From: Marsupella aquatica
Lineage: Eukaryota > Plantae > Marchantiophyta
NCBI GenBank assembly: GCA_973895155.1
Contig: OZ316899.1
Span: forward strand, 5,645,241 to 5,709,240
Length of the DNA: 64,000 bases
Direction of reading: 5' to 3'
The position numbers were made by a program, and so were the translations under genes. Below the pieces are notes generated by a model. That model made no database searches. It worked only from the letters and a program-made list of their open reading frames with translations, and had not been told where the DNA came from. Below, one piece after another: positions 13,872-57,843 of this stretch (position 1 is its first letter; every line of letters starts with the position of its first letter).

Positions 13872-14625
13872 TGTCGTGCCAAAATATTTTGGCTCAGGAA
13901 TGGCTTTTATAGGGAATGATGGGCAAGGCCTCTCGGTTGGGTTGCGTGCATGCTGACTTGGAGAGGCTGCTTGGTTGGATGGATTGAGGTTTGGTGATTG
14001 GGTGACTCGTTGTCACCAGGTTTGGTGTTTGGGTGAGTCACCGGGCTTGGAGTTTGGATGAGCCTCGCTGATGGCAACTGGCTCAGGCTGGATGGTTGGG
14101 TTTTTGATGCTACTTAAGACTTGAGCCTCGGCTCATTGAGGTTGGCGGTTGTCTATTGAGATTTGTTGAGTTTCATTCTGTGAGTTTCGCTCCGTTCTGC
14201 GGAACTCAACTATTGTGCGGCGGTTTTGGAGTTATGTGTGAGTGTTTGATCCAGGTGTGGATTTTCCCGAGTTTGGAACCTCGTTGGTCCAGGCCTGAGT
14301 TTCGTGTGAGCTATTTTTGACTAGTTGAGTAGCTAGTCAAGTTTTGGTTTTGTGAGCTAAGGAGGAGAGTTTTTCTGCAAATTTTGAGTAGATAGTCACT
14401 CGAGGAGTTTAGCTCAAGAAGTTAGAGGTAGCGGCCCGCCGTAGGGCCAGCTACCAGACTCTTGCGAGCAAGCTTACTCAAGGGCACCCATTGTAACCTT
14501 TGTGAGAAAAGTAAAAAAAATAAAGGAGTGAGAGTTCGCTCCAAAAAGTGCTTGTCGCCCGTCCCGGTCGCAGCCAAAAATGCGCAGTTTACCCGAGGAG
14601 CCCCTAACTTTAAGTCCTCGCAACA
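13872..14625 (+). repeat. 5' LTR (754 bp)
   Basis: TGTCGTGCC...CGCAACA, a direct repeat of 19787-20536 differing mostly by transitions. Confidence 0.95.
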
Positions 14626-14666
14626 TTGGCAACCATACAAGGGATTCCTTGGGGCGATTGGATGAG

Positions 14667-19311: not shown

Positions 19312-19786
19312 AGGGCGAAGGTCTGTGAGCAGATCCGAAAGGAGTATTGGTGGCCAGATTTGTATTGGGATGTTCAGGAGTATGCTGACAATCAAGGGAT
19401 CCATCACAACTTGAAGAGGCAGATTCAAGAGCTTGATCGGATTGACTATTGAGTCGTTGACATACAGGAGAGAGTGAAGGTTTGCAAGGCGCAAACTAGA
19501 GATGAAATGGACTCAAGTTCCGACTTGAGTGAGTTTGAAGTCAAGGCATTGGTCCAGGCGCATCCGTTGGACTTGAGTTTCGAAAGTGGCTTGACTGGTT
19601 CTGATTCGGATGAGTTGGACTTTGAGTTTTTGGAAAGTGGAGTGCTAAGGCCGAGTCTGAAGGCTTTGGGTTTGAGTTTCTTGAGGAGGAAGTGATCCAA
19701 GCGCATGGCTCGAGTTTGGACTCAGACTTAGAGGAAATCTGATGGATTGGAGCAGACCGGAGGCTGCTCAGGTTACTGGGGGAGGA

Positions 19787-24181: not shown

Positions 24182-27100
24182 TTACTCAGAAGAGTCTCCG
24201 TTGTCACTCCCTCCATTAGATCCTAGATCTTCTCCGATAAGAGACACTTTGGGAATGTTAGGATCCTCCTCTTCTTCCCCCTCTTCTATCTCATCCTCAT
24301 CTTCAGAATCAAAATTTAAGACAGACTTCAGTTTGTCTCTCTTTCATTTTGAAATTGAAGACTTTGGAGGGGCTTTGGGCTCAGACTCTTTTGGAGTAAG
24401 AAGATCCAGAAATACCTTAGAAGCAGTTTCAACAAACTCCTTCCTATTCTTGAGTCAAATTACAAATCGACCACAATTATCACCTGCAACAAATGTACTC
24501 CCCGAACCTACAGCCCAATCCATAACAATATCTCCTGGACACGTAATTAGTTCCAACACAGACTACATGAACCCTGGATGTAGTCTGGCATTCCCTGCAA
24601 ATTCAAGCTCTGGAGTTGTATCAACCTTCGTGAAGGGAAGTCCAATCAGATTTGTAATGGAAGGATCCTCTATTTTTGAAAGGGGTTTGAACTTAGGATC
24701 TTTTGGGACTTTCACCTTGGATGATATCCGCGAAAATACATCCAAACGTAAAATGAATACCTGAAAAGGGAACAAAATAGAGGAAGGACCCTTAGATTAC
24801 AACAGCGTCGGGCGCTAGCAAATAATCCACAAAATCACGTTGAATAGTTTACCTAAAATAAGGTCAAATAAAAAAAGAAAGTAATAGATAATATGAATAG
24901 CGCCTAGCGCTAGCAAAAGGATCAACAAAATTACCTGCAAATCAGACTTCGCTTTGTACATTGGGAACCCATGACGACATTATGTGTACATAGACACTGG
25001 AATTTCTTGGACTCTTGACAAGCGGAGATGACCTGCAAAATTTGATCAAACTCCCCCGTATGGAGTATCGCAATAATTCCGTCATCTGACAAAAAAGGAT
25101 CCATTGCCCGGAAAAAGGATTGGGCTAGGGTACAATCGGGGACGTTCCATTTAGGGACCTTTCTATCAAACAAAGTCGGTTTTAGCCCAGTTGGCAAGTA
25201 AATAAAACCAGCGTCAACACCAAAAGGTCTTTGCTTCCCACCCCTCACCACTCCTTTCAGCCGGCATCCAGATTTGATCAGGTCTTTCCCCCACTTTTCA
25301 GCATCATTTACCCATTCCGGCTTCTCCTCCTTATTAAACACACTGTCCACAAGTTCACTGACATTGGTCTCAACGAAACAATGACAAGACGACTTGGCTT
25401 TAAAATCCCCAACATCACGTTGGAGCCCAGTGGCAGCCTGAGAATCCTGTTCTGATTGTCCAGCATCTCAAGTCCTTCTGCTTTTCTTTTTTGTACTCGT
25501 CGCATCGATTGGGACAATTGATTTCCCAAAATTAACTGGTGTAAGTGGATCTGGTAAAGCGCCAGTATTTGCTTCTGAAGCTTTTGGAGTAACCTTCGTA
25601 TCATCTGTGCTATCTGCATCTGACTTCTTTTGACCTATGAACATATTGCAAAGAATGTGGGATTAGGGCCTTCAAGCAAACACTGATGAAGATTGAATCA
25701 CAAGAATGGCAGCGACGGGCACTAGCAAACATTTGAAAAAAAGATTGAAAACTTACGTTTCTTTCCGGATCGCGTGGAGGCACTTGGCACTGCAGTGTCT
25801 ATTTTAACTTTCCCTCATGGCTTGCGGCTCCTATCGACATGGACAACTACTGTCTCACAGTTTGTCTGTAACTCCGTAGAAGATTTATCGACGTCGCTAA
25901 GGAGACCTTGCTTCATCTCAGAAACAATGTTGGGAAGGATCTGCGACTTTGCAAGTTTCAGAAACCAATCCTTCTCCACTTCATCAAAGGGTGAATCCCA
26001 CTTGTCTGTGTCAAGGTACCATGGGCAGTGAATTCTTTCCCACTCGGACATTTCCCTTGGGGGTAGTTTACCCTCGGCAGGATACATCGAGTATAAGTCA
26101 CAAACAATATCTCCCTCCTTTACAGTAATCCACTTGTGAAATGCGGCTGGATACGCCCAAAGAGCATCCGGGGAATGAATTTCCATCCAAATGTAGAAAT
26201 GATACAAATACCTCTTGGCCCTCTTCTGATTTTTCTCGGTATATACCTCTTTATCAGGGTATTTTGATGGCCACATGGTGTTGAAGAACTTTGCCTTCAC
26301 AAGATCCCCATACCTTCGGAATTCACTTGAAATTACTTCAATCAGATTTTCTACCAAGTCACACCCTGACTGGGCAAGCCTATCAACCGGTAGCGTTTCA
26401 ATCGCTGTGGAAATTGCCGAGTGTAGCATCCCAATTGCAATTCCCTCGACGGTATTCCATGTTTGCCATGTGTGGCACCACTGCTTCACTGGATCATCGT
26501 TCACACTCGAAGGGTGGAAGAATTGTTTTCTCAACTCTGGAGTACAGTGAGCAACGAGCAATGTACACCTCAATTTTGGATCAAGCGTCGAAACTGCAGT
26601 GAAGAGTCTGGCACGGTCCATAGTGCAAACAACCGATTCTGGTTTTTTCTCTCGCTTGTTTTTTCTGTCAAAACATACATCTTTGCACAGGTACCTAGAA
26701 AATCTTCAAACTCAGGACTAAGAAGAGGAGTGATTTTGGACGTTTTTGTGGACCAATCTTTAGTAGACTCTTTCAACATGAGCAATTGCCGCTTTGTTAT
26801 GTCATCAGCCGACCAAGGATTGCCTTGACTTGCTGCCAGTGCCATGTCCATCTTGAACTGGTTAGTGTAAGCTTTAATTTTTTTTTCGCATAAAATATAG
26901 ACTAGAGCTTCCAGAGGCATTTTTCTTGTGTACCAAGAATGTTTTCGAGTCTTCTATTTGATATACTCAAACTTTGCATAATTGGCGCTGTCAATGATAG
27001 ACTTGTAGTGCTCTAGATCGTGAGAAAGAATCCTCCGGATTCTGTTTGCATCAAGGATCCACGACGGTTCAACAACGGCCTGCCCTAACCTGCAATAGGC

Positions 27101-27830
27101 CAGGTTTTCAATTATTAGCGTCGGGCGCTAGCTTAACTTAAACACTCAATTAGCCTATAAACACTGTATTATTCTATAAACACTCCATAAACATTGTATT
27201 TATGTAATAACCAAGTATTGCGGAAATCGTTAATTACAAGCTAGGGCAAAAAACGTACTGGTTCACAGTGTGCATAGCCGCCTCAATCTGAATTTGCGAA
27301 GCTTTGTCACCCTTGAAAATTGTGCAGAGAACTTTGGGATGATACTTGACGTTGTCAAGATTTTCCTTTGTGACCATCGTCCACGAGTAAAGTTGATGAT
27401 TCCCGTCAAAAACTGAGAACATTTTGTCTTTCAAGATCATAAAGGCAGGATCTGCCTCGCACTTCAGCTCAAACTTCTCGTTCTCAGCAACCCAAATTGC
27501 ATCCCAACTCTCCCTGATCTCTTCAGTGTAGATTTTCTCCACACCATCCGAATCGGTCGGCTATACAAAAAACTGCATTCCTATCCTGGGATTGTATCCA
27601 CTACTTCGGAATGAGTCTTTCAATTTCTCAATTGATGCATTCTCCTTCTGTAACGTCCAAACAACCTCCATGTGGACCAGGCGACAAAGCGGAATCCGTG
27701 GAGGTTCCTTCTCATTCCCCCGAAAATCTTTCCCAAACGACATAATGTGTTTCGAGATGACTTCATCGATTCCAAGTCCTACCTCGTTGCCCTCTCCCAA
27801 AGCGTAATCGATCATGCCATCAGTCTCCAT
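24182..27830 (-). pseudogene. Spliced gene for a ParB-like domain fused to a beta-class DNA amino-methyltransferase-like domain
   Basis: N-terminal RIPLCRL..GY..FSVFDGNH(Q). C-terminal VDAGFIYLPTG..W..FLSDDG (motif IV region), then LITCPGDIVMDWAVGSGSTFVAGDNCGRFVI*LK (motif X/I). Introns at about 27257-27090, 25757-25637 and 24933-24763. Several stops and frameshifts. Confidence 0.65.
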
Positions 27831-28917
27831 TCTGCCCCTTCTTGACTTCTGGCTCGGGAGTGTTGTGTTCGACAAAGGAATTGCTCCGCTCAATCTTGTA
27901 ACACAACGCGAATAGAATGCCCCAGAGAATGAAGATTGTGTACTCTTGCAATGACCGTGATCTCCCTCCGGAACCGTGGTATACCCTCTTGGAGAGCTTG
28001 GAGCGCTTGAAGGTTGCATCGTGGAGCCCCAAAGTTTGCGAAGGTGCTTGTACGACACAGAGCCAATGTCTATTCTCACGCTTTGAACAAATTACTGTAC
28101 AAAAAGAACAAGCAGGAAACCTTTAAAAATTGGGCGGTTGACATCATGGGAGGTAGATCGATGCGGAAGAAAAGGATCTCACTCACCAATCATGACAAGG
28201 ACAAGTGGCCGATACTATTTAGAATGAGTATATGTAACGCCTCTTTTTAACTGGGGTAAGGGAGGAGCGATGATCCGTAGGCTATTGTTAAGGAAGTCAA
28301 CTGCAAAAAGCGTGAAACAATGAGTACGTTCATGCACTTTACCATTAGATATAACCGTTGGGATAATACAAGTCATTCCTTTTGATACTAGCGCCAAGCG
28401 CTAGCATTCAAAAACCACTAAAATAACATCATTAACACTGATGTCAGCCATGAAATTATGTCAGCGCCGGACGCTAACTATATTTGATACATGTATATTT
28501 CCTATAAACAACAATTATATCAAACAAACTCAATGTCTTTTGACATTTTTGTTATTCCAATAAAATTAATAGAGTTTTTCACCTTTAAATGGAAGTGGAT
28601 TAATGATAGCGCCTGGCGCTAGCATATGAAGTTTGGTTTTTAGGTTTTAATTCCATGACTTATTTATGGTAGCGTCGGGCGCTAGTAAATATCTGATCAT
28701 GTTTCTCAAACTATATTATTGATGTTACCAGTACGTAGTGACGTTGGCAAAATGACAAACGACATTTATGTTTCTACATTTTACGACTAGTACCCGTTTT
28801 GTCATTCACAAACGATAATCTTCTGGAGTTTGTTACGAATTCACTTAACTTAAGTCGGGTTATGTTCTCCTATTCTCTCATTTTCTCTGTTTGTCAATTC
28901 AGGATTATTGTTCCGCA

Positions 28918-31900
28918 ATGTCTAATTCAGTTGTGCTTATGCGTTCTGGAACTGGAGAGATTGTACGCATTCCTTTAGGTTCTTCCGATACGTACAAACA
29001 GGTTAGTGAGAACTATCTTTGTGGAAGATTTGACATTGGCATCAATGACATTCTTTCCATCAAACTTGTTGATGCTTCTGGAGATGAGGCTGGTGACGCA
29101 TTGTTTGATATCGACGATGGAGTCAGATTTTGGCAACTGAACGCTGGGAAGAGATACTATATCAATCTTCGAGATAATTCCGTTAGGAATGAAATTCATC
29201 CGGTTCCAGTCATTCACCTTTCCGATAGTGATGAGGAGGATGTTGCCGTTCATTCGCAAAAATCGCCCAATCCGGGAACTTTGGTCAAGATGGAAGGTCA
29301 GTTTCCTTCCGAGACACACGTTGCGGGGGGTGTTGCGGGAGGTATTGTCTACCGTCGAAGCGCGATGGATGCTATTCTCAAATCAACTGGCCATAGTGAA
29401 CTGTCGTGATTCATCCAAACATGTGATTTTAGGCATGAGCAGGTGAATTGCCTCCCAAGCAAATACAATGGAAATGTTGTATTTGAATTGCCTCCCGCAA
29501 AAGGTCTTCTTTCAAAAGGTTCAAGACTCCGTGACATGGATCGGCTGAAAGACTGCTACTTCTGGACACAAATATTTCCAACCTCTGCGAATGTACAACC
29601 GAAAAAGTTCTGGGAATTTGGTAAAGTGATGTGTACAGGAGCACTAGAATGTCAGAATCAGAAGTGTGATTATCTTTTGCGGAAGAAACAAAGAAATTGT
29701 AAAGCTTGGGATGGGACACCCAAACTCGCGGGGCCACATACCGTAGGAAAGATGATTGACGAGGGTGGCGTAGTTTGTCACTATTGCCAACAATTACCCT
29801 TTTGTACTGAAGCATGTCCTGCAATGCTTTTTTATATGTACCCTCAACTACTTCTAGACGCGGATACTTGTAAGCATATGTCCCGTCTTGCTGTGCATGT
29901 CGGAACTCATGCTCATCCCAGTCAAAAAGTTTTTTCTCGTGGTGCTGAAAAGATTGCTCACAACTTCATAAAGAAACAACATGAAGCTACGCCGTGTGCC
30001 ACACCATCGGGTCTGAAGAACGCTATAACTGGATCTTTAAGGAAGGCTCTTTGTGTGTCCAACAATGACATTGGTGAATTGGAGGAAAGAGAAATTTGGG
30101 AGTCGTTAATGGTAGTTTTGACACCTCAAAAGTTCGCATCTCTTTTTCGAAGCGTTCGGCAAGACCAAAAAGGCAAAGGTGAGTTGGAGTTTCTTGTTGA
30201 AATGCAGAAATGCATAATCTTTCCCTTTCTACAACGTTACATGCTCCCAGGTCAAGGCTGTAAAGAGGATAGGCCACATATTTTCAAAATGACTATAAAA
30301 GGGCACGGATCTGGAGTTGATTTGTTGCGCCAAATGCAGCCTGGAGGTCCATTGGAAGGGGCATGGGTCAGTTTTGATGTGATGAGGAGGATGACAAAAG
30401 ATTGGATAACTTTTAGCGCACATGTTTATGATCACAATTATCGTGCTCTTTGCACAATTTTCACATGTGAGTTGAAAGCAGAAGATTCAGAGTCTTAAGA
30501 GAAAGCCTGGAAATTGATGATTGAGGTTTGCCATGAAAATGGGTTGGATAATGTTGTGATCCATGGATTCATGGTTGACAATGCCCAAGCTGGATGGAAT
30601 GTTGTTTGGAATGTGTTTTTCGAAGGACATCCTAACCCAGAAAAGGAGCGATCGGATGCGTTTCACTTCTATCAATTGTTTCATCGTCACTCGATTGAAG
30701 GTGTATTGGAAGAAAAACGAGATGAGCATCGGAAGATGTGGGACTCTTTAAGGAACGTGTCCACATTTCTTGGAGCATACAGAATTTCAAGGGATATCGA
30801 TGTATGGTGGAGATCTGGGAATTGTGTTCCAGGGAAGCTTCAAATGCTCCAAGGTTGGTTGGCGTGGTGGGTGGTCCGATGGCGTCAATGGGGAAATTTC
30901 ATTCATTTGGTGAGTTTCAACATCCAGTAACCACTCGAACTCATACTAGCGCTTGGCGCTACCATTATTTTCAGTTAGTGTGGTCTCGTAGGTTTCGTTC
31001 ATCATTATCTGGTTTTTGATACTAGCGCCCGGTGCTAGTATTAATGGACCACTTGTTTCTTAAATTTACAAAAATTTAGTTTGAATGTTGCTAGCGCCAG
31101 GCGCTGTCATTGATTTTATGTACATGTGGCTTAGTCATATTTCCTAAACTCTGCTCCTATGGTGGATGCAGAACAAAAGCGTGGAGGAAAGCGCTATGAT
31201 TCCTAACTGTACTACTTCAGAGGCGGCGCATTCCATAATGAAGGCTTGGCAAACTAAGAAAAAGGCTGGCCTATTCGAAGCATGTGAGATGGACCAAAAC
31301 AAGGGTGTCTCACAAGTTGCAGCATACACGGCGTATAAGAGAGATCTTCACCGAGGAACCGGACCTACAATTTGGGAATTGGCATTCCGTTCGACGGACC
31401 AGGCAGGTTCTTCAAAACTTTTCCAAGATGCTTCCAATATGCTTCTTTCCGGTGCGGCTGAATTCGACCTGGAAAGGAGTGGTCCACTCAATGGGGATGT
31501 TACAACAAAGTCTATGAAGAGGAAAGGTCAGGCCTCTGGGAACATCTCGGCACAAGACTCCCATCGGCATGACACTATTCTTGTAACATCACCAAATACT
31601 CGAGGCATGAAGAGGAAAAACTTAAACAAGACCAAATTCTCCCCGAATGCAGAGGGACCTGTTCACGATAACATTGGCATTGTGGATCTGTCGGAAAGTG
31701 AAATCGAAGAAGGATGTCATTGGAGTACTCCGCCGTGGAGGAGGGTGACAAGGTCTTCTGTAGCACCGCAAAGTGCACCTCCGAACCTCCAAAGGGTTGT
31801 CCATGACTCATCTATGTTGGAGACAGATGTGCGACCAGGTGCTTGGCACCTGCGAAGAGTGACAAAACATGGTGCAGGGCCTCAATGTAATGGATCTCTT

Positions 31901-32689
31901 GGTGGTAAATCGGATCGAGATGACTGTCAAAATCGTCTGAAAAAGGTTGGTTACCCGTCAACGGATGGTGTAGTTGGCATTGTTGTCAAAGGATACCGCA
32001 TGTTCATGGGAGAACCACATCCTGAGATGATTTGGTTCTGTCCCAATAATGCATGCTATAAGAGTCGGCCCCGTCGTAATGTGGTGAATCTTCCCCCGTT
32101 TCCTCATACCTTGCCCGTTTTGAAGGGCACGAATCTTTTGGAAGCTGAGATCCAATTCCTATCTCAGCAAGGGATTGCAATCAATCTAGAGGCCGGACGT
32201 CAGGCTCCTCCATCTCCATTTGACTTGCAAATCAATGTGAATGTTTTCCTTGAGAAAATCAATCTCCTGGAGCCAAATATCCGCCTTTGGAGTAGGAATG
32301 GTAAAAATACAGTCCCACGTTCAAATCTTTCACAAGGACACAACAAAAGAATTGAATCTGCAAACAAGGAGCCGATGACACTGATTCAACAGTTTGATGT
32401 TTCAATCGGAAACTCTTGGGGCAAACAATTTCATATCCAGACCCAAGAGAAACTTCGTATGGCAAACACTTACTGGGTGCAGATTTGTATTTTCCCCTGC
32501 TGTTCTTGTGAGGAATTCTATCGTCGCCATTCTCATGGATGGCCATTCATGCCTTGCAAGCATCTATATTGGGTTTATACCAACGTCCTCAAACTAGATG
32601 TCGTGGATTCAACTTTGGCTAGTCAGCCAATTTTGACCGTAGGTGAGGTGAGGCTCATTCTAGCTAGGCAGAATTCTCTAATCTTATAG
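28918..32689 (+). pseudogene. MULE-type transposase with GCM/WRKY-like zinc domain, DDE core and C-terminal SWIM finger
   Basis: One frame from 28918 to 30909 with stops at 29407 and 30496, a phase-0 intron at 30910-31171, then an exon to 32689. Motifs are CTGALEC..C..C..HAH, SFDV (D1), FMVDN (D2), DAFH, TTSEAAHS (E) and CSC..CKH (SWIM). Confidence 0.8.
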
Positions 32690-44041: not shown

Positions 44042-45902
44042 TCTCGACAGTCTATTCGACTCCAAGTATAGGAGAAGGTCTATAGAAAGTGGAAGGTGAA
44101 CCCAGGGCGAAGCAGTTTTTGCAATTATGATTAGGCTAGGAATAGGTTAGTCAACTCAATGAGTGTTGATTAGATGCGCACTTTACAATTGTTTGTTGTA
44201 CTATGGCAACAACGGAGTAAAAGTTAATTTGTTATCATAACAATTCACACTTGGACCAAGGCAATTGCGTTCAATCAGGCGATGGCGGTTGACGATACTC
44301 AACCTTCTCACATCCAAGCTCACCCAGGAACCCCTGTAAAAATCCATTCAGTGGCACAGAGGCTCATTTGCTACCTTGCGCGTGGCCATTATTGTTGCCT
44401 GGTCCTTGTTAGTTTGCTCTTACGCTCCAATTCCACTCTTGATCGAACTCACTTTTATCAAAGAAAACCAAAGGAGAAGCGCGTAGTGTAGCAATATTTA
44501 GTCAGAGTGATCGGCAAAGGTGATTAGGAGTTCTTTGCAAGCGATTGTAGACCTGCGGGACTGCAACAATGAAGTGGCATGGGAGATGGACTCAATCAAT
44601 GGACTGAGAAGGTTAATTAGTATGACCCTTACCACTCTCAGATTCTGGATTGGTTGAAGAGGTAGGCGCCAAGCCCTTTGAGACTTATTGGTATTTTTCC
44701 CTAAGAAAGCTGCATACGGCAAAGGTACACAAATTGGTGGTTAAAGTAGCACAAATCAATTGCAAGAAGGTTGCACTCACCAAGGACGCAAACTACAATG
44801 AGGTGCGGGATTACATTACCAAGCTGTATATCAACAAAGAAGGCTTCCAGTCCATAGCTAAGATAATTTTAGTGGTGCCAACAAAGTATTTTAAGCTGAA
44901 GGGCTGTCGGCCGGAAGCTAACTCAAACGGAGTTTGAAGAGATCCCAGACTACATTGAGCAATACCTTGTGGCCAAGCAAAGGGAGGAAGAAATCAACTA
45001 GCAGTGGGAGGCAGTACAGAATCTCACCTTCCTCAGCAAAACCTCTAATGCATTCAATTGGGAATGGCAACTCTACCAAAACCGACCACCAATCGGCCTA
45101 TCATCTTGGCCAAGTGGGTGCCACCCAGTCAGGCCTAGGTATGCACGGTGAACAATGCAGAGTGTTCTTTGGACTTAGCTAGACAAGGTAGTCCATACCT
45201 AACGCAACGCTCAAGGAAACAGGCTAGGACAATGCAGGGTCCTGAACTTGGTCTTGGCTGAGGTCGACCCCGCCCCCAATAGTCACAACTACATTATCAG
45301 GACTTTTTACGTGTTACATGAAGACGTTAAGCCCGACGTCTCCTTGCTGCTAAAGAAAGGCGACATACTCAACGTGAATGAGGGCACGTTTTGTATGAAG
45401 TAACAAAGGTTACAGTTTACATCATCCAAAACGACGTTACATACGTCGGTCCATACTACGTTACATATTAACGTCGTAAATAAAGACGTTATTCTGGACG
45501 CAGATTGAACAAGGAAATCAGCTGATAACATTGTTTAAAATGACGTTAATGTCAGATTACGTAGTTTGTGACTTTGTTAATGATGAGTCTGTCCAGGACG
45601 TATGAGTAGTAAGTCGTGTGAGGCTTGGTAAAAATGGTGTTAACAAGAACGTTTGAAAATAGTACCAAGAATGGAGAGACGTGAATGGAGTGCCGTTTGT
45701 GGTAAACATTAATCTTGTATGGAACATCCTTCCAGGCTACCTTAGTTGGGTGGGCTTTAGGTTTAGGTTCATATACACACGGAATACACATAAAATAGAC
45801 ATATAAAGTCCGGAATGCCACTATAAATGGGTGGCGTCAAAAGTTTTTGCCAAAAATGTACAAAATGCAGGTGGATGTCCACCTAGTCATGCATGGTATA
45901 CC

Positions 45903-48112
45903 CTAATGCCGCTGAGAGCGGCTCCTATCACATCCAGACCTGCGAACAAAAATACGTGGCGGTGCCTCCGACTGTTTGCCTCGGGGCTGCAACTCGTACC
46001 GAAGTGGATCCTCGTCTGAACTACTGCTACCAAACACCAACTCCGCAGCTCCCTTGCCTCTACTCCTAGGGACTACATCTCTAGTGCCATTGTGTCCCCT
46101 AGTGGTATCCCTCTCGACACGGCTCCTCTTCCTCTCTCTATGTCTCTCCCTCCCTCCCCCTCTCTCTCTCCCTCTCTCTTCTCTCTCTCTCTCTCTCCGT
46201 CGTCTATGGCTGGTATGACCCCTATCAGTCTCCACTGGAGGGGAGAGGTTAGAAGATGACCGGCCCTGTGTACCTAAACTGCCCTCCTGCCCACAATCTA
46301 CTAAGGCCTCCTCCTGTGTATCAGGCTCCTCCCCTCCATGATCTGCCTCCTCATCTTCCGCAATGGGCCGTGCCACTAACCCCTCTGGAGGACTCCAATC
46401 CTCTTGGACATGACATAAGGGATCAGTTTACCTCCTGCAAATAGTGGATGCAAAACCTAGTATAGAAGGAACCTAACCTGACTATGTAACTTACCACTGG
46501 GTGGTCCTTGGGGATAGAGTCCAGCTTAGCCCATAGGGCCGCCGAGCCATAGCATTTTGAATAGAGCCGCTCCTGCTCATTTGGCTCGGCGTTGGCTCCA
46601 AACTTGCATTTCTGCAGGAAATTGGAGAACGTCGTCACCATCATCGTTAATTACAATGTACCTAACGATGTTTTCTAATTAACGTCGTCCAAGACAAGGT
46701 ATATAGTGGAACTGCCATATTAACAATGCAGAAATGACGTTAATTAAATGTAATGTTGCGAGAGACGACGTTAGGTAGGATGAACGTAGGGGGTTTAGAT
46801 GTAAAATTGAGAACTTGCGACGTTAGAGGAGAAAAACGACGTTAATTCAATGTTCTCACCACAGCGGCCGAAGCATGAACAAGCTGTGCTTTGAAGAGGG
46901 TGGGGGACTTACATAGGTTGCAAGGAAGCCTCGCCATCCTCCCTGGCCCAAGAAATTGGTCACACGCAGGCGGCCATTTGATTTGCGGGCTGCAGCAGCT
47001 TTGTCCCCCATGTGCACTCGCTTGCCTACTGGGGTGTCAGGTGCTGCTTCCAACTCAGCCACGATCAACTTGAAGTCGGCGTCGCTCATTCCTTCTGGTT
47101 TCAGGTATTGCTCTGTCCTTGGGCATCTCATTTTTTGAACCTTGTTTCTCCATCTAAACCTCCGATCTGCAAGGTAGCCTACGATCTTATGTCTGATGTG
47201 CCTGTAGTCTATTTCACGGCCGTTCCTAAACCCAGCTTGCACATCGTTCAGGAGGAGCTAAAACTTCTTTGCATTCTGCGTGAGATCCTTCCAAGTTGTC
47301 CAACCAGGACAGTGCTTGGCACAACACGTCTGCACTCGATTTGTGAGGGCCTCCTCATCCAGAACATCCGGCCTAGCATCAAACGCATCCAAGGTGATGG
47401 TTGGGAGTTTGTCTCGACTCACAGCAGTAGTTACAGGTCACACAGGAGAAGGTTGTCGCTTCTTGTGGGAGTGACATTCACGCTAAGGTGAGTACCTCTC
47501 TCTTCTGTCTGCCCTTGCATCTCCCTCTGTTCTTCTTCTTTTGTATGTACCTCTACTAATATGTGGATCTGCATCTCTATACTCCTTCCCTTTCCCCTTC
47601 CGTCTTCTCTCATCAAGGCTGCTATTGCTGTTGTGTGTTCTATCACGATGCCTTCTCCGCCCGTGAGAGTCCCGATCCTAATCAGGCTGGAATCTGTCAT
47701 GTGCTACCCTGACCACGCTCTTGATTGGGGTCCCACTAGGTGCGTGAGAATCAGGCTGCATTCCATTGAAGGCAGGATCGTCCCACCCATCATCTAGTAG
47801 GGACGGGAAGGAGTTGAGAGCATCGATCGAAGGCCCCCCATCCTCCCCCAAGAGCATTGCATTCTTAGTTTCCACATAATCATCAAGGGTAGGAGCATTG
47901 GCCCCTATATTTTCCAGGTACTCCAGAAACTGAGACTCCTTGCTTCCTTTTCCTCCCAAGAACTTCCAACTCTGGTTGAAAGCATGTATCAGCGAATGTG
48001 TCAATTGCATAGCTTTACGCACCTTTTCTAACTCCCCTGGATCATCCATAGCCACCAAGTCTGCATCAAAATCTCCACTGGAAGGGAGATAGCCTGGATG
48101 AGCCATAGTCAT
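45903..48112 (-). pseudogene. CACTA-2 second gene, TnpA/Transposase_24-like, divergent from TnpD
   Basis: LPTITLDA..W..GFRNGREID..KI..NFLGQGGWRGFLATY followed by gtaagt. Three exons as in 7097-9120, with several stops. Confidence 0.7.
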
Positions 48113-48527
48113 TCACTATTAAGATAGGAGGTCGAGAGGGGGAGAGGGGAAGTGTTGAATGTTGAATGTGAGTCACATTCGAGTCACTTCTCAATGTTTT
48201 GTTAAAGGAAAACAGTCGTAGCCCATGAACCTTGGAGACCCGGCGTTACCCTAATTTAACGTCATTAATCACAACGTTAACCAGGGGTGTAGGGTTTAGT
48301 GGCGACGTTACACATAATTACATCATACCAAACGACGTTAACTTATTAAGTACGTCGTACATTATGACGTAAACTAAATTCAGCAACCTCCCCACAACCT
48401 AAAAAATGACGTTAATTTTAGAAGAACGTCGTGTGGATGGACGTTATTTTGGTTAACGTAGCGGGATACGTTTATGCTTGGGGTTTAATATGTTGTGGGG
48501 GCCTTTGTAAATTTGATCACAGGGGAC

Positions 48528-51500
48528 ATGGCAACCTATGCATCGGACCATGATGGGGGTAGGCATCATCGGCACAGATACCATCATCATCATAGGGGGA
48601 CGTATGATGAGTCGGATAGGCAAAGGGATGACTCGTGTGATGATGACGATGAGCATGGCGGTAGTTCTCACCAACATAGACACCATCATCGGCATAGGGG
48701 GAGTTCAACTTCATTGGGCTATAGGAGCAATGACGAGCGGCGGAGGAGGAGGGATGACGAGGGAGGGAGGAGGAGGGATGACTCATCCTATGAGGACCAT
48801 GGTGGGGGTACTTACACCCGACACAGAGATGACCATCATCATAGGGGGAGGGACGACCTGTCGGACCAGGAGAGAGATTACTCACCAGACATGTATGATC
48901 GATCTAGGCGTCACCGATCCAGGCGTCGTCGACGTAGACATCATTCCAAGGGTAGGAGAGGCCGGAGCCCCCATCATGCTGATGGATTTGGAGAGGCCAT
49001 GGCTGCTCTTCAGGGGATTGGGCCAGTTCGCAAGATGCCTTGCCCTTGCAGACGATGCAAGGGTGTTGTCTTACACGAGAGGACCACTGTCCTTAGCCAT
49101 TTAGGGTTCCATGGTCGTTACACCCCCCCGACCCGAGAGGTAATACAATTTTGTTGGGTATTGCAATTATGATAACATCTCCTTCCTTGAATTGTTTTTT
49201 GATTATCATATTCTGAACTTGTTTTGGTGAAAATGTGGAACAGATTCCTGTTGTAGTGCGATCTTCGCCTGTGGACCGCTTGAGAGACATTGCATATCGT
49301 GCACTCGCACCACTCGTCCATCCATCCGATTTGCCAGCCACATTGAGGGAGATAGACCGTGTATTGAGGAGGAGGAGGAGAGTGTTTAGGATGCACCCTA
49401 TTGAGAGGGGAGTAGTGGTGACCACTAGACCCCGATCGATTGAGTCCCGTCCACCTAGGATTGTTCCGCCCCAATGCCCTTTTCTTGATGCATCGGTGTC
49501 CCGGGCACCAAGACAGTTGCGAGGGAGAGCCTTGGACATCTTAAAGGACTCCTTCCCAGCCCAGTTTGGACTCCCTATGGACCTCCCGCTACGGGAGCCT
49601 ATTATAGTTTGGGACCGCCCATGGGTCATCCTCCCCTCCACATTGGGGACTCATGTAGGACTTGGAGTATTTGCTCTTGTGGATATCGTGGTCCCTACCG
49701 GTTGTGCACCCGATGATTTGCCTCAGTTGTTTCCATTCTATGGGCCCAAGTATTCGGCGGCGAGATGGCACATCTTGTCCCGACAGTGCCCAACCTTTAG
49801 TCGATATGGCATGTCACTAAAGTTGGACCCTAGGTATGCTCAAATTGATGGTTACCCACCTCGCACGGGGAACTTGGCGGGTTACATCAACAACACTATT
49901 GGTTCTCGGCGTTCAGGGTTTAGGCCAAACGCTGAGTGGCACGAGTTCCATGACCAGAGTCACCCTCGTTTGCCTGTAGCATGCACGCATTACATCTTGA
50001 CACATGCTACCCGCACCATTAGAGCAGGGGAAGAGATTCTCGTAGATTATGATTGGCATTGATGTTTACATGTGTACATGACATATTCATTATGGGGTGA
50101 CCCTTGCATTTTTCATTATTGATGTTTCACTGTAAGCTTTATCACGGAAACCCTTTCTCTAATTGTGATTTGTCATTGCATATTGAAAACTCTAGGATGG
50201 TGTACATATTACTCCCACACCTCACCCATCAATGATGACTACATCAGCCCGTGCCTTTCACGTACGTGCCACCTTACATTTCTCAGACGAGGAGGATGCT
50301 GAGGGTCAGCCCCTTGACCATGATGAGATGGACGATGAGGATGAGGAGTACCATGATGCATATGATGGAGAGTTGGATGACGATGGAGAGTTGGATGATG
50401 ATGTTGACGATGAGGGAGATGAGGGAGATGACCCTATCCTTGAAGAAGATGCCTTTGCCCACCTTGTTGACATTCACTTTGGACCTCATGCACCTGACGC
50501 CGAGCACCCTATCATGGAAGTGGATCAAGAAGATTGGGATCACTTGGAGACTGAAGCCAGAACACCACTATTTGAGGGATCTCCATCCTCACGGAAAGCT
50601 TGTCCTAAAATTATCACAACTCTGGAATTTCATCTAGTGAATATTGGGCAGTCTAAGTTGTAGTGCCAGGCATGCCATCTAGCTACTTGGACTAACTGCA
50701 AAAAGTCTGGTGTTTGTGGTTTTGCAAATCCAGGTTGGGTGCAACTTTGTTGATGTTGAATTTGCAAGGAGTTTTCAATGGTTCGGATGTCCATACAGAT
50801 GCACTCTTCCAATTGTTCCACGGAAAACTCTTGCCCCAACCAAACACTCTCCCTGGATGTATGAGGGAGGCTAAGAAGTTGTTAGCCTCAATTGGATTGG
50901 CTTTAGAGACTATCCACATGTGCCCAGGTGGGTGCATCTTGTATAGAGGGGTGTACAAGGATCACACTCACTGCCCAGAGGAGCACTGTAGGCTTCCACG
51001 GTATCGACCAGACACCATTGGAGACAAGATTGCAGAAAAGGTAATGTTTTCCTCAACGCAATGTGAGAACAAGAAAGTCCAACTTTTAACGTTGCATTCT
51101 TTCAAACAACGTCGTACATGACTATGTAATTGATTACTTTACGTCATCCATCTCACTTTATGTCTTTCCACCTGACGTTTTTTTGTTTTTACGTCGTATG
51201 GGATGCAATAACTAACGGTGCATGGTACATCGTATGTAAGAAACGTCGTCCTCCACGATGTTAGTTTTAATAATACGTAGTGTGGAAGGACGTTTAGTGT
51301 GATTGTCGTCAAATTGACGACGTTACATTGGATCTGGCAGGTTTTTTGTTATTTCCCAATCACTCCCCGACTTCAGCATCTCTACCGACGAAAGCACTTA
51401 TCCACACTACAGACTTGGCATGTGGAGAACAAATCCCCACCAGGGATAATGCAATACCACCAAGATAGTCCAGCGTGGAAGCACATTGATGCCACTTGGC

Positions 51501-54186
51501 CAAATTTTGCCCAGGAGCCAAGAAATGTTCGTTTGGGGTTGGCAGTCGATGGAGTGAACCCATATAAACAACGACGGAAGCCTAAGTCCATCTGGCTTGT
51601 TCTTTTGATAAATCAAAACATCCCTCCATGGTTGGCAATGAAGAAGGGTCATGTGCTTCTATTAGCTATAATTCCTGGACCCAAGGCCTGTAAGAATCCT
51701 GATATCTGTTTGGCTCAAGCTTATGAAGAGCTACATAATCTATGGGAGGTTGGAGCAGTGACAACAGATGTCACTCGTGAAGCAGGCAATGGCAGGACCT
51801 TCAATACGAGGGTGATGATCACTCATTGCACCACAGATGGTCCAGGTAATTCATTGGGCAACCCAATGACTATTGTTTGTACAATGTCATGTACAATGCA
51901 AGTGTTGGGGTCATTTGTGGTCTGAACATGGTTCAATGAAATGGCAGGTATGGGGACAATATCTTGCCTGAAGGTGGCAGGTTTTTCAGCTTGCCCTTCA
52001 TGTGGCCCAGAGTTGCGTGGGAGGTACTCAAGACTACTGCACAAAACCACATATGAGGGCAGTAGGGTCCGGTTGGCAATGGATGACCACTTGCGCGACA
52101 AAACACAACACATTGGGCAGAGACTGAAGTGCGACCATGTCCTAAAGGCCCTTCAGCTGAAGGACAAATTCAAATGGCAGAGAAGGTGGAAGCAAAGTTA
52201 CTGAAACCCAAGGATTGTGGAGTAAACCAACGCTCAGCTATGTGGGACTTGCCTTATTGGAGGGTAAGTGATAGAAGTGCATGGTTCCTTTACAGAAAAT
52301 TAGACCAATAAAATGCTTAATTTAGAGATTGCAACTGATTCAATATGTTATTTCAATTTCCAGAGACTCCAGGTTCGATGGTTGTTGGACCCCATGCACA
52401 TTGAAGTGAATGTTGCTAAGAACTTGGTGAAGCACATTTATGGGACGAATGACACTCGTGGAGTCCGAGAGGATGCTGAGAGGGTTGGAGTAGTGAAGAG
52501 TTGTTGGATAACACGTACTGGGGAGAAATCTCCTGGTCCTTGGATTTTGCCAAGAGAGGTTTTGAAGGACATGAATGGGATGATAAGCAAGATGAAGTTC
52601 CCTAGCCATTACGGAGCTGGTTTTCGTGGGTGCACTACAAGGAATGATCACATACCCCCAATAGGGTTGAAGTCTCATGATTATCACAAGTTGATACAAC
52701 ATGTGCTACCAGCAGTCTTGCGTTGTTGTGATGATTCCCGGGAGCGTTGTTTACGCCGTCTGACTCTACATGAGATGTGCTCCATTTTTAGGTATGATAA
52801 CGTACCCTCTCTTCCATTGCTCTCTTGCAAGTTCTTGTTACCGCTGGAGGAGCCATGTAATTCAACAAGTATTTCAAACTCATTTTTCTATGGCCCTATG
52901 TGGATCTGATATACAAAATCTTTGATGGTTTTGAAGAGGAACATAGGTGGGTATGCGCTAAGGAGATAAAGGAGTCTGAGATTCCTTTGATGAGGGAGAG
53001 GTCAGCTCGCGTGATGTGCAATATGGAGAAGGTGTTTCCCCCATGCATATTTGACATGCAATTGCATTTACTATGTCACTTGGTGGATGAGGTCGCGATT
53101 GCTGGTCCTGTCCATGCACGTTGGATGTATTGGGTAGAGCGCTTCATGAAAGTGCTCAAGTCCATGGTGCATCAACCAGCTCGACCAGAGGGAAGTATGG
53201 CAACGGGGTATATCATGTCGGAGTGCATCTTTTATTCCGGAGGGATGATAGGGAGTTTGGACACAGAAGCTCCCACAGCTTGGGAAGAGGCACAAGATGA
53301 TGACAATGGTGGGTTGCGTTTGATGGGTGCATCAAAAAAGCATTCACTACATGACGACATACTTCGCCTACAGATCCACAATTATGTGTTGGGAAATCGC
53401 CCAGAGATGTCTCAGTGGAGGGAGTTGCATAGGTACATATATGCAACTCTGTATATATGTTAATCTAACAGTAGACGTTGTTCTACATTCTATGTGTGTA
53501 GAAGTTAGAGTGGGTTCAAGGAGCACTTCTGTGGATGAGGTCGCAATATTCTCATGGATTCATACATTTTTTGCAGTGCATTCTTGGAGCAGCAACCGAT
53601 AGTTGCATGACGGTATGCATTATTTCGCGTATGGGCATTGGAGCGTATGGATAGGCTCCTTGCAGAGCATGGACCCTTATCCATTCCCATTGATGTACAG
53701 AACATCATTAGGGGACCAGGGTTGTGGGCAACGACCCATACACACATGTATGAGTCAGGGCACCACTTTCGCACTTGGAGGACAGATCACATGAAGAAGA
53801 GTACATGTAACTCAGGAGTGTTCATGTTGACAGACCCAGGTGATGTTGAGATTCCCTATTGTGGCACTATATTGGATATTTTAGACGTTCACTTTGGGTC
53901 ATTTACTACTATTGTGTTAGAGGTGCTGTGGCACAAATCCATCATGTCACCTCCACATAGAGCCACCATGGTGAAAGATGAGTGTGGGTTCTATCGGGTA
54001 GACACGACTCGTGTAGCACCATCCGGGATTGAGGTTAGTGACACTATAGTATTTCCTAGCCAGGTGGATCAGTGTATTATGGTTCCGATGCACACTATGA
54101 GAGGATGGTCCATCGTCATTCCCATCTTCCTACGATGGAGGAAGGGTTTGATGGCTTCAGTAATTGTAGATGATATGGATCCATGA
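48528..54186 (+). pseudogene. CACTA-2 TnpD-type transposase, multi-exon
   Basis: Exon 1 at 48528-49139 (H/R/D-rich plus CPCRRC..H..H) and exon 2 from 50196. Motifs IHMCPGGCILY, RNVRLGLAVDG, NIPPW, LDPMHIEVN, LKSHDYH, HARWMYWVERFM and KDECGF. Confidence 0.9.
49244..50062 (+). CDS. Intact SET/PR-like domain exon nested in CACTA-2 transposase intron 1
   Basis: GLGVFA..LFPFYG..IDGYPPRTGNLAGYINNT..PNAEW..ATRTIRAGEEILVDYDWH* covers SET motifs I-IV. CAG acceptor at 49241-49243 in phase 0, with no internal stop. Confidence 0.9.
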   Translation: MPVVVRSSPVDRLRDIAYRALAPLVHPSDLPATLREIDRVLRRRRRVFRMHPIERGVVVTTRPRSIESRPPRIVPPQCPFLDASVSRAPRQLRGRALDILKDSFPAQFGLPMDLPLREPIIVWDRPWVILPSTLGTHVGLGVFALVDIVVPTGCAPDDLPQLFPFYGPKYSAARWHILSRQCPTFSRYGMSLKLDPRYAQIDGYPPRTGNLAGYINNTIGSRRSGFRPNAEWHEFHDQSHPRLPVACTHYILTHATRTIRAGEEILVDYDWH

Positions 54187-54701
54187 CCATAAATGTATTC
54201 AGTGCATGTATATATTCGTTATGGCCACCTTCATGTGGGTTTGTAGCATCTGTGGGTAACGTCGTTGTATGACTATTACGTTCGGTAGACCAATGTATCT
54301 TCAAACTACGTCGTACCAGCCATACGTTAATTCCAATTAACGTCGTTTTATTGAGCCTTCAACGACGTTAATTTAGCCACGACCCAGTTTACGTTACTCC
54401 ACACGACGTTGATTCTCCACTTAAAATGACGTTAAACTAACTTACGTCGTTTTAGGGTACGTATTAAACCAAAGACGTCGTGTATTGCAACGTTACTATA
54501 TCCGCGCGACGTTAATGACAGTGGTGACATTAATTGGCACATGCATTCAAAATGAAAAACATGAGGGAGTCTTTATTCAGATTCAGTATGATATAGAGAT
54601 ACAAAGGTCCTACAAAGCACATTGCATGTCCACCACAAAGCGACTATAACCTAGCCGAATCACTAAATTGCCTCATCCATTGACATCCAGATTGTTGCTA
54701 C

Positions 54702-55412
54702 TTAAGGCGTTCCTTCACCAGACCAGTAGTACTCCTCATCTGCCTTCCTTCTTTTGTAAGAATCACGCCTCTGCCTCTGGTTCCATTTCTTTCGGATGAC
54801 CTCTTCCCCAGCCTTTAGCCTTTCAGCCTCAACCTCAGCTGCACAACTTTCCTTGTAATCATACAAGACAATGTGAAGCTCAGTCGGAGACAACTCACAT
54901 TTGGGCAATGTAGGTGGATATGCCTCCCCATCATCTGGGTTGGGCGCCTCATCCAACATTTGATCATCACCTGGATGCAGCAGGAAGTCTCCTGGATCCA
55001 ACTATTTGTTGGCCAGAATTGAGCACTCTACCCAACAGATAGAAATGAAATGAACTGTCTCTGCAAAGTGCTCAATAAATCCATGGTAGTCACTGAAGTG
55101 CTCAACAATTCTTTCCACATATAGGCCAGCAAGTAGTCTGTTTTTGAGGTACACAACTTCTCAATAACGCCTCCCCGACAAAAGAACCCACGGATAGTCT
55201 TGTCCTCTTCACCAAGTGGAAGGAAGCAACAATGCACATCCTTGAAGAACTTGCACACCATGATTGAATACTGAGTCTATCCCACACTGCAATTTCTCTG
55301 TACTCAGGAAGAGTGCATTCTCCAAAAATCACAAACGCAAGCCTACTTTGGTCTCAGCACTCTTAAACCAAAATCCTCCCGTAGAAAACCCAAGCTATAC
55401 TCGAGTCAACAT
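54702..55412 (-). pseudogene. Additional frameshifted ORF of unknown function in CACTA-2, convergent with TnpD
   Basis: Adjacent coding-like pieces at 55102-55332, 55028-55261 and 54702-55001 lie between two motif clusters. No domain recognised. Confidence 0.4.
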
Positions 55413-57843
55413 GGACTACTCCTCATTCAAGTCGTCCACACCAATGTACTTAACGTCTAACATGGCTTGATTCAATTGGAACATCCTACAGAGCAACGTT
55501 ACCACTTTAACGGCTCCCTCCACGACGTAAACATTGACGTCGTTATACCCTAAACACATTATGTCCTCTAATACAACGTTAATATTGAACGACGACCAAA
55601 GCGACATTTAGGACAGCTCATCCAGAGACGTTAATTTTAAACGTGTTTCCAGCGACGTTAAAATGGGGGCAATCGGCGCTTAGATTTCTCCGACGTTGCC
55701 GTTACATCGGACGTAGTTATAAACGTAGTCATGGAAGTCGTTAATTATATTAACGACGATTATGAGGAGGTATTGTTAGCATCCGACGCAACAAAATCTA
55801 GTTGTGAGTAGCACGCCAAGCACCCCGACCACCGCAACTCAGGTAAACCCCAACCCTGCTCCATCATAACCTACTCCCCTGCCTACTTTGTTTGGGACCA
55901 TTGTGAACAATGGGCCCCAACCACCCCCTCTTGTCGTAGAACCCCCGCTACCTCCAACGTAGCCACCACCAATTCCGCCACCTCCCATGTATACCATTCC
56001 TTCCCCTATACGGACTATGGAGGAAGCCGTAGCCCCAACCATGGAGGCACCTTGCCAAAGACTGTGGAGGAGTACTGAGTGCTTCCCAATACTTTAGCCA
56101 GCAGGTTGCGCATTACTTCCAACCGGCCTTCTTCATGTTAGATCACCACCCTAAACTTATGACCTGCTTGGAGGATGAACTCATGGCCAAGGGGAATGAG
56201 ATCGGGGGCCTCCAAATGACCATGGAGGTCTTGGAGACAACAACCACCACCCACCAAGGGGATTTAGTCTGCATCTTAGACCAGCGAGACAACTAAACCA
56301 AGAACTACTTAAGGTTCAAGCAAACCTTAAGGGAGTAGAGGCTATTGTAGCTCAGCTTGAGGAGGAGTTTGTGGCTCAAGTTAAGAGCCTGGCCGATCTA
56401 AATAACCAGTTTGTGCAGCCTGCTCAACAGGTGAATAACATCACTTCCAATCGGAATAAGTGGTTGGCATAGCATCAGGCCAACCTCAAAATGATCAGTC
56501 TCCTCAACATGGAGATGATGCACTTGCAGGCTGAGGTGTACAAAGTCTCCAACAAGGTAGGGGAGGCAGTTGGGGATAACCAAACCTTGCAAGATTGGGT
56601 TACTCTCTTGGTGAGCCAATGGGATGGGGCGGGAAACGCCTCTGACCAAGTTGGCTCGAGGTCCCGACCGGGGTCCCAATCTGACAAGGGGACAAACCTA
56701 GGGCCGGCAGCATAGCACGCGCAAGCGGTGGGTGGAGAAAGGGGTGGTGAGGCAGCCATGCAGTACAACATGGAGGCAGTGGCATCTTTTGGGCTAACTT
56801 TAGTGGCAGATTAGTTGTCATTAGGTGCTGGTTAGTAGTGCAATAGATAGGATTAGGACAACTCAGTTAGGACCCTTGGGCGTAGGATAGAAGTCAATCA
56901 ACATGTTGCAAGTGATTGACAATAAGACCTAGGGATTAGTATCATAGTCAACCGCCTCAGCCTGCTGATAGTCAACTGAGTCAGTAAGCTCATGGTCAAC
57001 TGCGTCTATTTTTGGAGGTTGCAACTAGTTAGGTATTTAGTCAGGGATTTCCGGGGGAAGTGGCATCTCATCCAACCCTTCGACAAGTAGTATTTAAGAC
57101 CCCCCTTCCAGTTGGAGGGGGGGCTATTGGTTTATTTTGGTAAAGCAAGCTTACATGGTGCATGGGGAGTCCCGGCCTAATTAGGATTAGAGAGCACTAT
57201 AAGGAGTGAGAACCAGAGTTGAGTTTGTTGGGCAAGCGCGAGATAGGGTCTTGTAGAGACTGGGGATCAACTGCCGTTAGGTCTGCTAGTCGCTTAGAAG
57301 TCAAGTCGACCATGTATATGTCACTTCTTTATCAGAGTAAACTTGGCCTTTCCCCCTGATCTTTGCAAGTAATTTGTGTATTGAGCATAACTTGTCTTTG
57401 ACAAAGGCGCCATTTCAAGGGATGTACCGAGTGTGGACTAATGGTTGGGATTGTGATAGCATGTATGCTAAGTACGTCGCAAGTTCTTGTTGTTGGCAAT
57501 GGCTTGAAAGTCCCCAAGCCGGGAGTTAGTCTGCGTCACTAAGTGTGGGTATGTTCTAGCGGTGGAATGCAAACATACCTATGATGTCCCTAGATACGTA
57601 AATGTATACATATATAGTCCAACTTGGACTAACCCGGGCCACTACTCCTCTCCTTGCCCAAAACCTCACCTTTATTGGTGGTCAATTGAGCCCTAGAGCG
57701 TTAACCCGGATTTATGGCCTGGGTTGTTGGCGCAACATTGAGTCAACCAAAAACACAACCTCAACCTCAACGAAAAGACCCAACATATTGGAAGGAGGTA
57801 TTGTGACGCCGCCAGCACGGCGGTTAATGAGTGATCCGGTCTA

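Follow-up and report, generated by a model that had tools for sequence, protein, structure and literature searches.

A SET-domain exon inside the transposase gene of a liverwort CACTA transposon lineage: a predicted alternative terminal exon and candidate element-borne methyltransferase

SET-domain genes carried by DNA transposons have been described before, among them those of the red-algal Plavaka elements (CACTA/EnSpm superfamily), in which accessory gene 2 (PAG2) of Bostrychia moritziana encodes an N6-adenine DNA methylase together with a SET domain and is proposed to modify the chromatin of its element (10.1101/2025.02.11.637652). As summarized in PMC12730594, SET methyltransferases are also found as products of the HarbingerS and MuDR families of Phytophthora (Kojima and Jurka 2014, Repbase Reports, cited therein), and SET genes have been captured by Helitrons. 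The VANC anti-silencing proteins of the VANDAL (MuDR) elements of Arabidopsis are a further reference point (passages of PMC12730594 and 10.1101/2025.02.11.637652), as is SETMAR, a primate SET-mariner fusion; the passages of 10.1101/2021.11.30.470311 that treat the latter, in a survey of eukaryotic chromatin genes, also name SET among the domains fused to transposon domains. The locus analyzed here lies in the liverwort Marsupella aquatica, in a window of 64,000 nucleotides (nt) (the whole stretch of DNA that was analyzed: contig OZ316899.1, positions 5,645,241 to 5,709,240 of the forward strand; all coordinates below are those of the window). It holds copies of two CACTA elements, CACTA-1 and CACTA-2 (winC1 and winC2 in the alignments), and in CACTA-2 an exon coding for a SET fold is found within the transposase gene.

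Comparison with these systems shows likenesses as well as differences. As with PAG2, a conserved SET accessory coding sequence is present in a DNA transposon of the CACTA/EnSpm superfamily; however, PAG2 is a separate gene in a three-gene cassette of Plavaka, Mutator or Zisupton elements of red algae, whereas the liverwort SET domain stands alone behind a zinc-finger exon, inside a Transposase_21-type transposase gene of a land plant. HarbingerS, MuDR and Helitron elements are likewise DNA transposons with their own SET lysine methyltransferase, and, as expected of a transposon-encoded SET accessory gene of the kind known from HarbingerS, MuDR and PAG2, the liverwort SET coding sequence lies inside the element termini and is conserved across copies and lineages; HarbingerS and MuDR differ in belonging to other superfamilies with oomycete hosts, and the passages of PMC12730594 that describe them report no shared transposase first exon. 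VANC resembles the liverwort protein in that it is encoded by a transposon and is considered to influence the epigenetic state of the copies from which it derives, but it has no SET fold and causes DNA hypomethylation, and an anti-silencing role for the liverwort protein would be speculation. SETMAR shares the presence of SET and transposase sequences in one locus, but it is a domesticated host gene in which SET lies upstream of a captured transposase within one protein, whereas the liverwort sequence belongs to a mobile element and its SET coding has its own stop. In maize En/Spm, TnpA and TnpD are produced from one transcript by alternative splicing; the liverwort element would resemble it in that a single CACTA transcription unit gives rise to the transposase as well as to another protein that has 5' sequence in common with it, and would differ in that TnpA is a DNA-binding protein with no SET domain, whereas the second liverwort product has a modelled enzyme fold and its splicing is predicted.

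The first-pass annotation of the window, made without a search, knew of no SET-bearing CACTA clade. This statement has to be softened in view of PAG2 of red-algal Plavaka (10.1101/2025.02.11.637652), to which the SET genes of HarbingerS, MuDR and Helitrons may be added (PMC12730594); for the Transposase_21-type CACTA elements of land plants, no paper describing a SET domain was found in the literature. Three features appear to be new: the host is a land plant, SET occupies an alternative terminal exon that has the first exon of the transposase in common with it, and the SET subtype has no histidine at a motif position discussed below.

The SET exon of CACTA-2 is an accessory coding exon of a liverwort EnSpm/CACTA lineage; the zinc-finger exon precedes it and the other transposase exons follow (Table 1). 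CACTA-2 is a complete element of 10.5 kb (45284-55806) flanked on both sides by the 3-bp duplication AGT, a target-site duplication of this length being typical of CACTA/EnSpm, and it is an EnSpm/CACTA element by its Transposase_21 and DUF4218 coding, its CAC termini with their 3-bp duplication and its subterminal repeats; the 12-bp termini pair at 11 of 12 bases and start with CAC, the literal CACTA pentamer being absent (CACAA). The open reading frame (ORF) in which the SET exon lies (49235-50062, plus strand) is open over 275 codons and carries, as the first-pass annotation had read it, an uninterrupted exon with the motifs GLGVFA, FPFYG, IDG..GNLAGYINN..PN and ATRTIRAGEEILVDY in that order; the SET fold takes up ~170 residues (ORF residues ~104-275) and is preceded by a linker of ~100 residues. 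When many genomic copies, in the form of sequencing-run contigs, were aligned, no indel variant was listed inside the exon. The SET exon of this copy is intact, and the transposase of the same copy is frameshifted.

The explanation that we regard as probable combines an accessory SET exon, two-way splicing, and a zinc-finger-SET methyltransferase targeted to the element or to its transposition complex. A single pre-mRNA would follow two splice routes, in one of which exon 1 is joined to the SET exon to give a zinc-finger-SET protein of ~420-500 amino acids (aa), and in the other of which the SET exon is skipped and exon 1 is joined to the acidic exon to give the transposase. The zinc-finger-SET protein would be a lysine methyltransferase dependent on S-adenosylmethionine, and the N-terminal module common to both products (Transpos_assoc-like, scoring below threshold) would guide each of them to element DNA or to the transposition complex, where the SET domain would methylate lysine on histones or on the transposase and so tune the chromatin state or the activity of the element.

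A search of Pfam, an AlphaFold model and a Foldseek comparison each returned a SET match, in keeping with the first-pass assignment of the domain. The window ORF matches Pfam SET (PF00856) with E 3.8e-5 and 24.5 bits, above the gathering cutoff of 22.4, and its relatives score 19-25 bits, some of them just under the cutoff. An AlphaFold2 model built from a 40-sequence family alignment has a mean predicted local distance difference test score of 85.9, with values >90 from residue 90 to the end (residue 275); in Foldseek it gives 277 matches to the PDB at E<=1e-3, and the best-ranked of those listed (LegAS4, SUV39H2, SETD2, G9a, EZH2, NSD1, MLL1, SET8 and PRDM2) are all SET lysine methyltransferases. 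Re-alignment of the model with VIA gives Z 12-13 and a root-mean-square deviation of 2.2-2.9 A over 120-130 residues, within model residues 104-275, and the partners in VIA and Foldseek include SET8, Set1, MLL1, EZH2, SET7/9 and LegAS4 at Z 12-13. In the ESM Atlas a Riccia homolog has SET clusters as neighbours, and a PDB sequence search with the family profile gives marginal matches (E 0.6-0.9), every one of which is a SET protein. The SET fold of the exon product is thus shown. The best structural matches span enzymes for H3K4, H3K9, H3K27, H3K36 and H4K20; the target lysine, and whether the effect would be anti-silencing or self-restraint, are not readable from the fold.

The residues expected of a SET active site are largely retained. 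Of the two glycines of the GxG motif, G142 shows at least 90% conservation among the 40 aligned sequences and G144 does not vary, the motif being lost (GYE) only in the decayed CACTA-1 copy; conservation across the family extends to N219, which is the Asn of the N-H pair, and to the PN further on; and E267 is invariant and Y272 at least 90% conserved, their E..DY motif aligning with EELTYDY of MLL1. Catalysis by the product of the SET exon is plausible. Viral SET proteins (giant virus, phycodnavirus) also match the fold, and the minimal forms among them resemble the liverwort domain as small SET domains that have no pre- or post-SET zinc clusters and are carried by a genomic parasite, but they differ in their viral context, in sequence, identity being 14-24%, and, in known examples, in keeping the histidine of the NHS motif.

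Related loci come from Calypogeia fissa (L001, L021), Riccia (L012), Logan contigs (L002-L009, L010, L022) and environmental contigs (L017-L020, L023). In CACTA-2 the last codon of exon 1 is complete and is followed directly by the donor, GTAATA (49139/49140); the SET exon starts in phase after AG (49243/49244), and its acceptor, like that of the acidic exon, is in phase 0; the codon-then-GTA donor is common to CACTA-2, L018, L019, L014, L002 and L022. The first ATG in the SET exon of CACTA-2 is codon 53 of the ORF, downstream of two conserved and confidently modelled helices, and in L022 conserved coding likewise precedes the SET ATG; the SET exon is therefore predicted to be translated from an upstream exon. 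On the 3' side of the SET stop an in-phase AG acceptor is present at the homologous point in all nine loci compared, and the peptide that follows this transposase-side acceptor is conserved well before any ATG in L018, L019, L020 and L002 (for example GDPHxPHWSVLP, in L018, L019 and L020), which argues that the transposase part is also translated from an upstream exon and not from the stop-terminated SET exon. The position of the SET stop is itself conserved, 3-12 codons past the DY motif in every lineage. In the other of the two clades the zinc finger and SET form a single ORF, namely in Riccia P0037 and P0046 and in L010 (a continuous ORF of 430 aa), and natural proteins with both domains exist in Riccia (KAL3682317.1, KAL3688689.1). 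The simplest reading of these sequences is one shared first exon with two alternative continuations, SET or transposase.

Several observations weigh against the explanation offered above. The sequence occurs in four sequencing runs from two studies, none of them recorded as RNA, with contigs that are DNA-like, of high depth and rich in variants, and GT..AG joints were not seen in these DNA-like contigs; nor was a spliced form found among the Logan contigs L002-L009, L010 and L022, all of which keep the introns. In L018 and L019 the SET exon starts with ATG, and a C. fissa protein of 294 aa is annotated as single-exon, and a free-standing SET protein is therefore possible. As to targeting, DNA binding by the Transpos_assoc-like module is putative only, the seven exon-1 sequences that match this family score 16.6-23.5 bits against a cutoff of 27.7, and the conserved gene upstream of exon 1 could be the DNA-binding partner of the element. 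As to catalysis, the histidine of the NHS motif is absent in every family member, being replaced by Ser or Asn (GYINS; GYINN in CACTA-2), and the protein has no post-SET region, ending 3-12 residues past the DY motif; methyltransferase activity is therefore uncertain.

The missing NHS histidine makes a SET fold without catalysis the chief alternative; such a fold would serve as a binder of histone tails or other proteins, or as an architectural partner of the transposase in the manner of TnpA of En/Spm; we consider it rather unlikely. It would account for INS or INN in place of NHS in all members, for the absence of pre- and post-SET zinc clusters and for the marginal sequence-level matches to solved SET enzymes. 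Against it stand the near invariance of GxG, of the Asn of the N-H pair and of the Glu and Tyr of E..DY, which are the ones chiefly linked to cofactor and catalysis; the fact that PR/SET enzymes such as PRDM9 also do without the NHS histidine and are active, and that minimal viral SET proteins function without post-SET regions; and the presence of a separate conserved upstream gene that could take the TnpA-like role.

A second alternative appears distinctly improbable: SET would be an accessory gene in its own right, located inside the first transposase intron and not joined to the zinc-finger exon, with a start of its own and possibly also a separate promoter. The ATG right at the start of the SET exon in L018 and L019 and the single-exon annotation in C. 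fissa would fit it, as would the many database matches of 230-300 aa that start inside the linker; the late first ATG of CACTA-2, behind two conserved helices, the conserved coding ahead of the ATG in L022, the in-phase donor and acceptor in all lineages and the single ORF for zinc finger and SET in the Riccia and L010 lineages speak against it. Very improbable, and rejected on the conserved stop, is the view that SET is an internal domain of a long SET-transposase fusion of the SETMAR kind: some Riccia gene models do join SET to Transposase_21 (P0090, P0086, P0120), but these models truncate SET or read through degenerate copies, the stop follows soon after DY in every lineage, and in CACTA-2 the stretch from the catalytic Tyr to the stop offers no GT that could serve as a donor.

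The accessory-exon explanation is consistent with the distribution of the family. A profile search of 1.84 billion representative proteins gave 161 SET-family members at E<=1e-3, with the SET match at the C-terminus in most of the longer full-length ones, and a metagenome locus scan with a narrower alignment gave five short loci. The named sources are the liverworts C. fissa and Riccia sorocarpa, with distant relatives in the fern Adiantum nelumboides and in Ginkgo. SET, acidic exon, Transposase_21 and DUF4218 follow each other in this order on one strand in every locus with enough downstream DNA, two exceptions aside, and SET is linked to transposase in at least 11 independent loci (the linked loci being CACTA-1, CACTA-2, L001, L021, L012, L002-L005, L017, L018, L019, L020 and L023). 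The exceptions are a short contig with an odd order (L016) and a solitary, divergent C. fissa gene, P0061 (L011:8001-9512), which encodes 503 aa with a Cys-rich N-terminus and a SET domain of the family (35% identity) that continues past the usual stop; no transposase lies within 8 kb of it, no relative in its length range was found other than P0061 itself, and it represents either a copy that was domesticated or what is left of the donor gene. No close host SET family was found, the family does not nest in host SET genes, and its members are tied to Transposase_21 wherever the flank suffices, save for the two exceptions. In one C. fissa locus (L021) a CACTA-2-type element with a SET exon is nested in a CACTA-1-type element, between the SET exon and the transposase of the latter (L021:4597-5260, 9683-14937 and 17124-19610), and the outer transposase is 86% identical in protein sequence to that of CACTA-1 in the window; both element lineages therefore coexist in C. 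fissa. Outside transposons, a protein of 1024 aa from an ENA metagenome contig (P0139) combines SET (67 bits in Pfam) with a GNAT acetyltransferase and has the same His-less motif, DGDPxRSxNLAGYxN, as the transposon family; going by its sequence, it may represent a wider subfamily from which the transposon SET was drawn.

Substitution patterns point in the same direction. By the Nei-Gojobori method the ratio of nonsynonymous to synonymous substitution rates (dN/dS) of the SET exon is 0.27-0.37 among L018, L019 and L020 (Fisher p 1e-6 to 3e-8) and 0.22 between two C. fissa copies (Fisher p 2e-6), and it is 0.22-0.49 for the transposase exons of the same loci; to judge from these values, which are not near 1, the SET exon has evolved under purifying selection, as has the transposase. 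A maximum-likelihood tree of SET largely agrees with one built from concatenated transposase segments: (CACTA-1, Riccia L012), (CACTA-2, C. fissa L001) and (L018-L020) appear as clades in both, with support of 92-100. Their sole difference, the placement of L002, counts against strict co-descent; the transposase topology is not rejected by the SET data (approximately unbiased test, p 0.095). In a tree of 36 SET sequences those linked to transposons form two large groups, of which only one has good support, and long branches at the base lead to the solitary C. fissa gene, Ginkgo, Adiantum and P0065; the presence of the exon is therefore placed before the split of the two element lineages. The first-pass annotation had proposed that SET is an old, selected module of the element, and the low dN/dS, the linkage to Transposase_21 and the agreement of the trees bear this out. 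That SET is instead a recent, non-functional capture of a host SET gene fragment (Pack-CACTA transduplication), as CACTA elements are known to make and as the existence of a solitary C. fissa relative might suggest, is hardly credible and was rejected on dN/dS and co-descent, the exon being present in two deeply diverged element clades and in both liverwort classes sampled (Riccia, Calypogeia), with no close host family behind the 161 representatives and with a solitary gene that has no relatives in its length range.

Plants silence transposons by histone and DNA methylation, and to our knowledge the countermeasures described for transposons of land plants (VANC of VANDAL) have DNA methylation as their target, none of them being a histone-code enzyme. 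That a SET exon built into the transposase gene has been kept under selection in both of the liverwort classes sampled suggests that a lysine methyltransferase is supplied by some transposons of land plants themselves. An active protein would offer a direct handle on how a mobile element writes or rewrites its own chromatin, and a compact, naturally targeted SET enzyme for study, in parallel to the SET accessory genes of red-algal Plavaka elements; with the intact exon of the window and the annotated Riccia proteins, the idea is open to test by ordinary expression and assay work. A more specific model, in line with the silencing-countering histone writer suggested in the first-pass annotation, can be put forward only tentatively. 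Of the heptamer AACGTCG the window contains 26 copies (2.5 expected), 20 of these inside CACTA-2, with clusters near both element ends and at internal sites (46628-46843, 48303-48431, 51108-51324, 54258-54513), and the cluster at 48303-48431 lies directly upstream of exon 1, in the gap between two divergent genes. The element might switch, by choice of the 3' exon, between transposase and an active, self-targeted histone writer that would mark its own chromatin at these clusters (ends and promoter), thereby resisting silencing or limiting itself. Were this model true, it would be the first transposon-encoded, self-targeted histone writer in land plants.

Table 1. Features of the CACTA-2 and CACTA-1 copies in the 64,000-nt window.
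Feature	Coordinates	Strand	Remarks
CACTA-2, left terminal inverted repeat CACAACTACATT	45284-45295	+	Read directly; AGT before it at 45281-45283
CACTA-2, second conserved element gene	46907-48112	-	Divergent from the transposase gene, head-to-head; tblastn with the 387-aa ORF of L018
CACTA-2, exon 1	48528-49139	+	His/Arg-rich, with CxCxxC...H zinc motif; Transpos_assoc-like; start is the first in-frame ATG
CACTA-2, predicted GT..AG intron	49140-49243	+	104 nt, holds an in-frame stop; between zinc-finger exon and SET exon
CACTA-2, SET exon (predicted alternative terminal exon)	49244-50062	+	272 codons (49244-50059) and TGA (50060-50062); acceptor AG 49242-49243
CACTA-2, acidic exon opening the transposase part	50196-50663	+	In-phase AG acceptor 50194-50195; conserved coding before the first ATG (50232)
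CACTA-2, transposase exon	50714-51121	+	Cys/His motif ahead of Transposase_21; conserved in all related loci (tblastn)
CACTA-2, Transposase_21 (tnp2) catalytic-core exon	51299-51925	+	PF02992, E 7.8e-36
CACTA-2, two extra bases shifting the transposase frame	52093-52094	+	Sequencing-run contigs and comparison with L021
CACTA-2, further transposase exons	52313-54186	+	Include DUF4218 (52900-53463; PF13960, E 1.2e-29); tblastn
CACTA-2, right terminal inverted repeat CACAACTAGATT (minus strand)	55795-55806	-	AGT after it at 55807-55809
CACTA-1, transposase ORFs	1163-4262	-	Transposase_21 at 3216-3716 and 2360-3145; DUF4216 at 1163-1921
CACTA-1, SET homolog (pseudogene)	4582-5396	-	Stop 5229-5231; frameshift near 4690; GxG changed to GYE
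CACTA-1, zinc-finger ORF, Transpos_assoc-like	5444-5737	-	Pfam 17.1 bits, E 0.006

Apart from the SET exon, the transposase gene of CACTA-2 is interrupted by the two extra bases at 52093-52094, which hardly any contig contains in three of the four sequencing runs and about half of the contigs lack in the fourth (X4); the coding match jumps there from frame 2 to frame 1, and the C. fissa locus L021 is continuous at this point. Because of this shift the CACTA-2 copy is probably unable to move on its own. Within its further transposase exons a region is homologous to the DUF4216 ORF of CACTA-1. Seven independent exon-1 sequences have Transpos_assoc (PF13963), the N-terminal domain of plant CACTA transposases, as their highest-ranking family, in each case over profile positions ~30-65, the exon of CACTA-2 matching at 19.9-22.9 bits (E 1e-4 to 8e-4, under the cutoff), and in Pfam the match was not found in the Riccia proteins, the L010 protein or L023. 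The second conserved gene of the element is 26% identical to its L018 counterpart over 399 aa (E 2e-24), and homologs occupy the same upstream, opposite-strand place at L018:753-1913, L021:7149-8393 and L012:7725-7934 (all minus) and in L019; its product has a Lys/Ser-rich middle, and it may be a TnpA-like partner of the element. Pfam gave no family for this gene, for other upstream ORFs or for the acidic exon.

CACTA-1, which probably runs off the start of the window, has its parts on the minus strand in the same order as CACTA-2: zinc-finger ORF, SET and Transposase_21, the second Pfam match to Transposase_21 (PF02992) in the window having E 5.8e-39 and DUF4216 having E 2.5e-7 (PF13952). Its SET sequence had been read in the first pass as a homolog of the CACTA-2 exon at the same position, and this is so as regards place and descent (39% identity over 158 aa, E 3e-29), but the sequence is a pseudogene: an in-frame stop lies inside a conserved basic stretch, the frameshift puts the true C-terminus (ending with TAG 4582-4584) in another frame, and GxG has become GYE. 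Since a C. fissa relative (L021:4723-5229) reads the CACTA-1-type C-terminal stretch in a single frame, the defects reflect decay of this particular copy, and the different intron pattern that had been ascribed to CACTA-1 is at least in part a matter of such decay.

Elsewhere in the window, a quick scan of the six longest ORFs of 24201-32689 gave no Pfam family at E<=0.01. The first part of exon 1 of CACTA-2 (48528-48950), ahead of the zinc motif, is a long His/Arg/Asp-rich low-complexity stretch, and this stretch yields several overlapping spurious ORFs on the opposite strand and in other frames.

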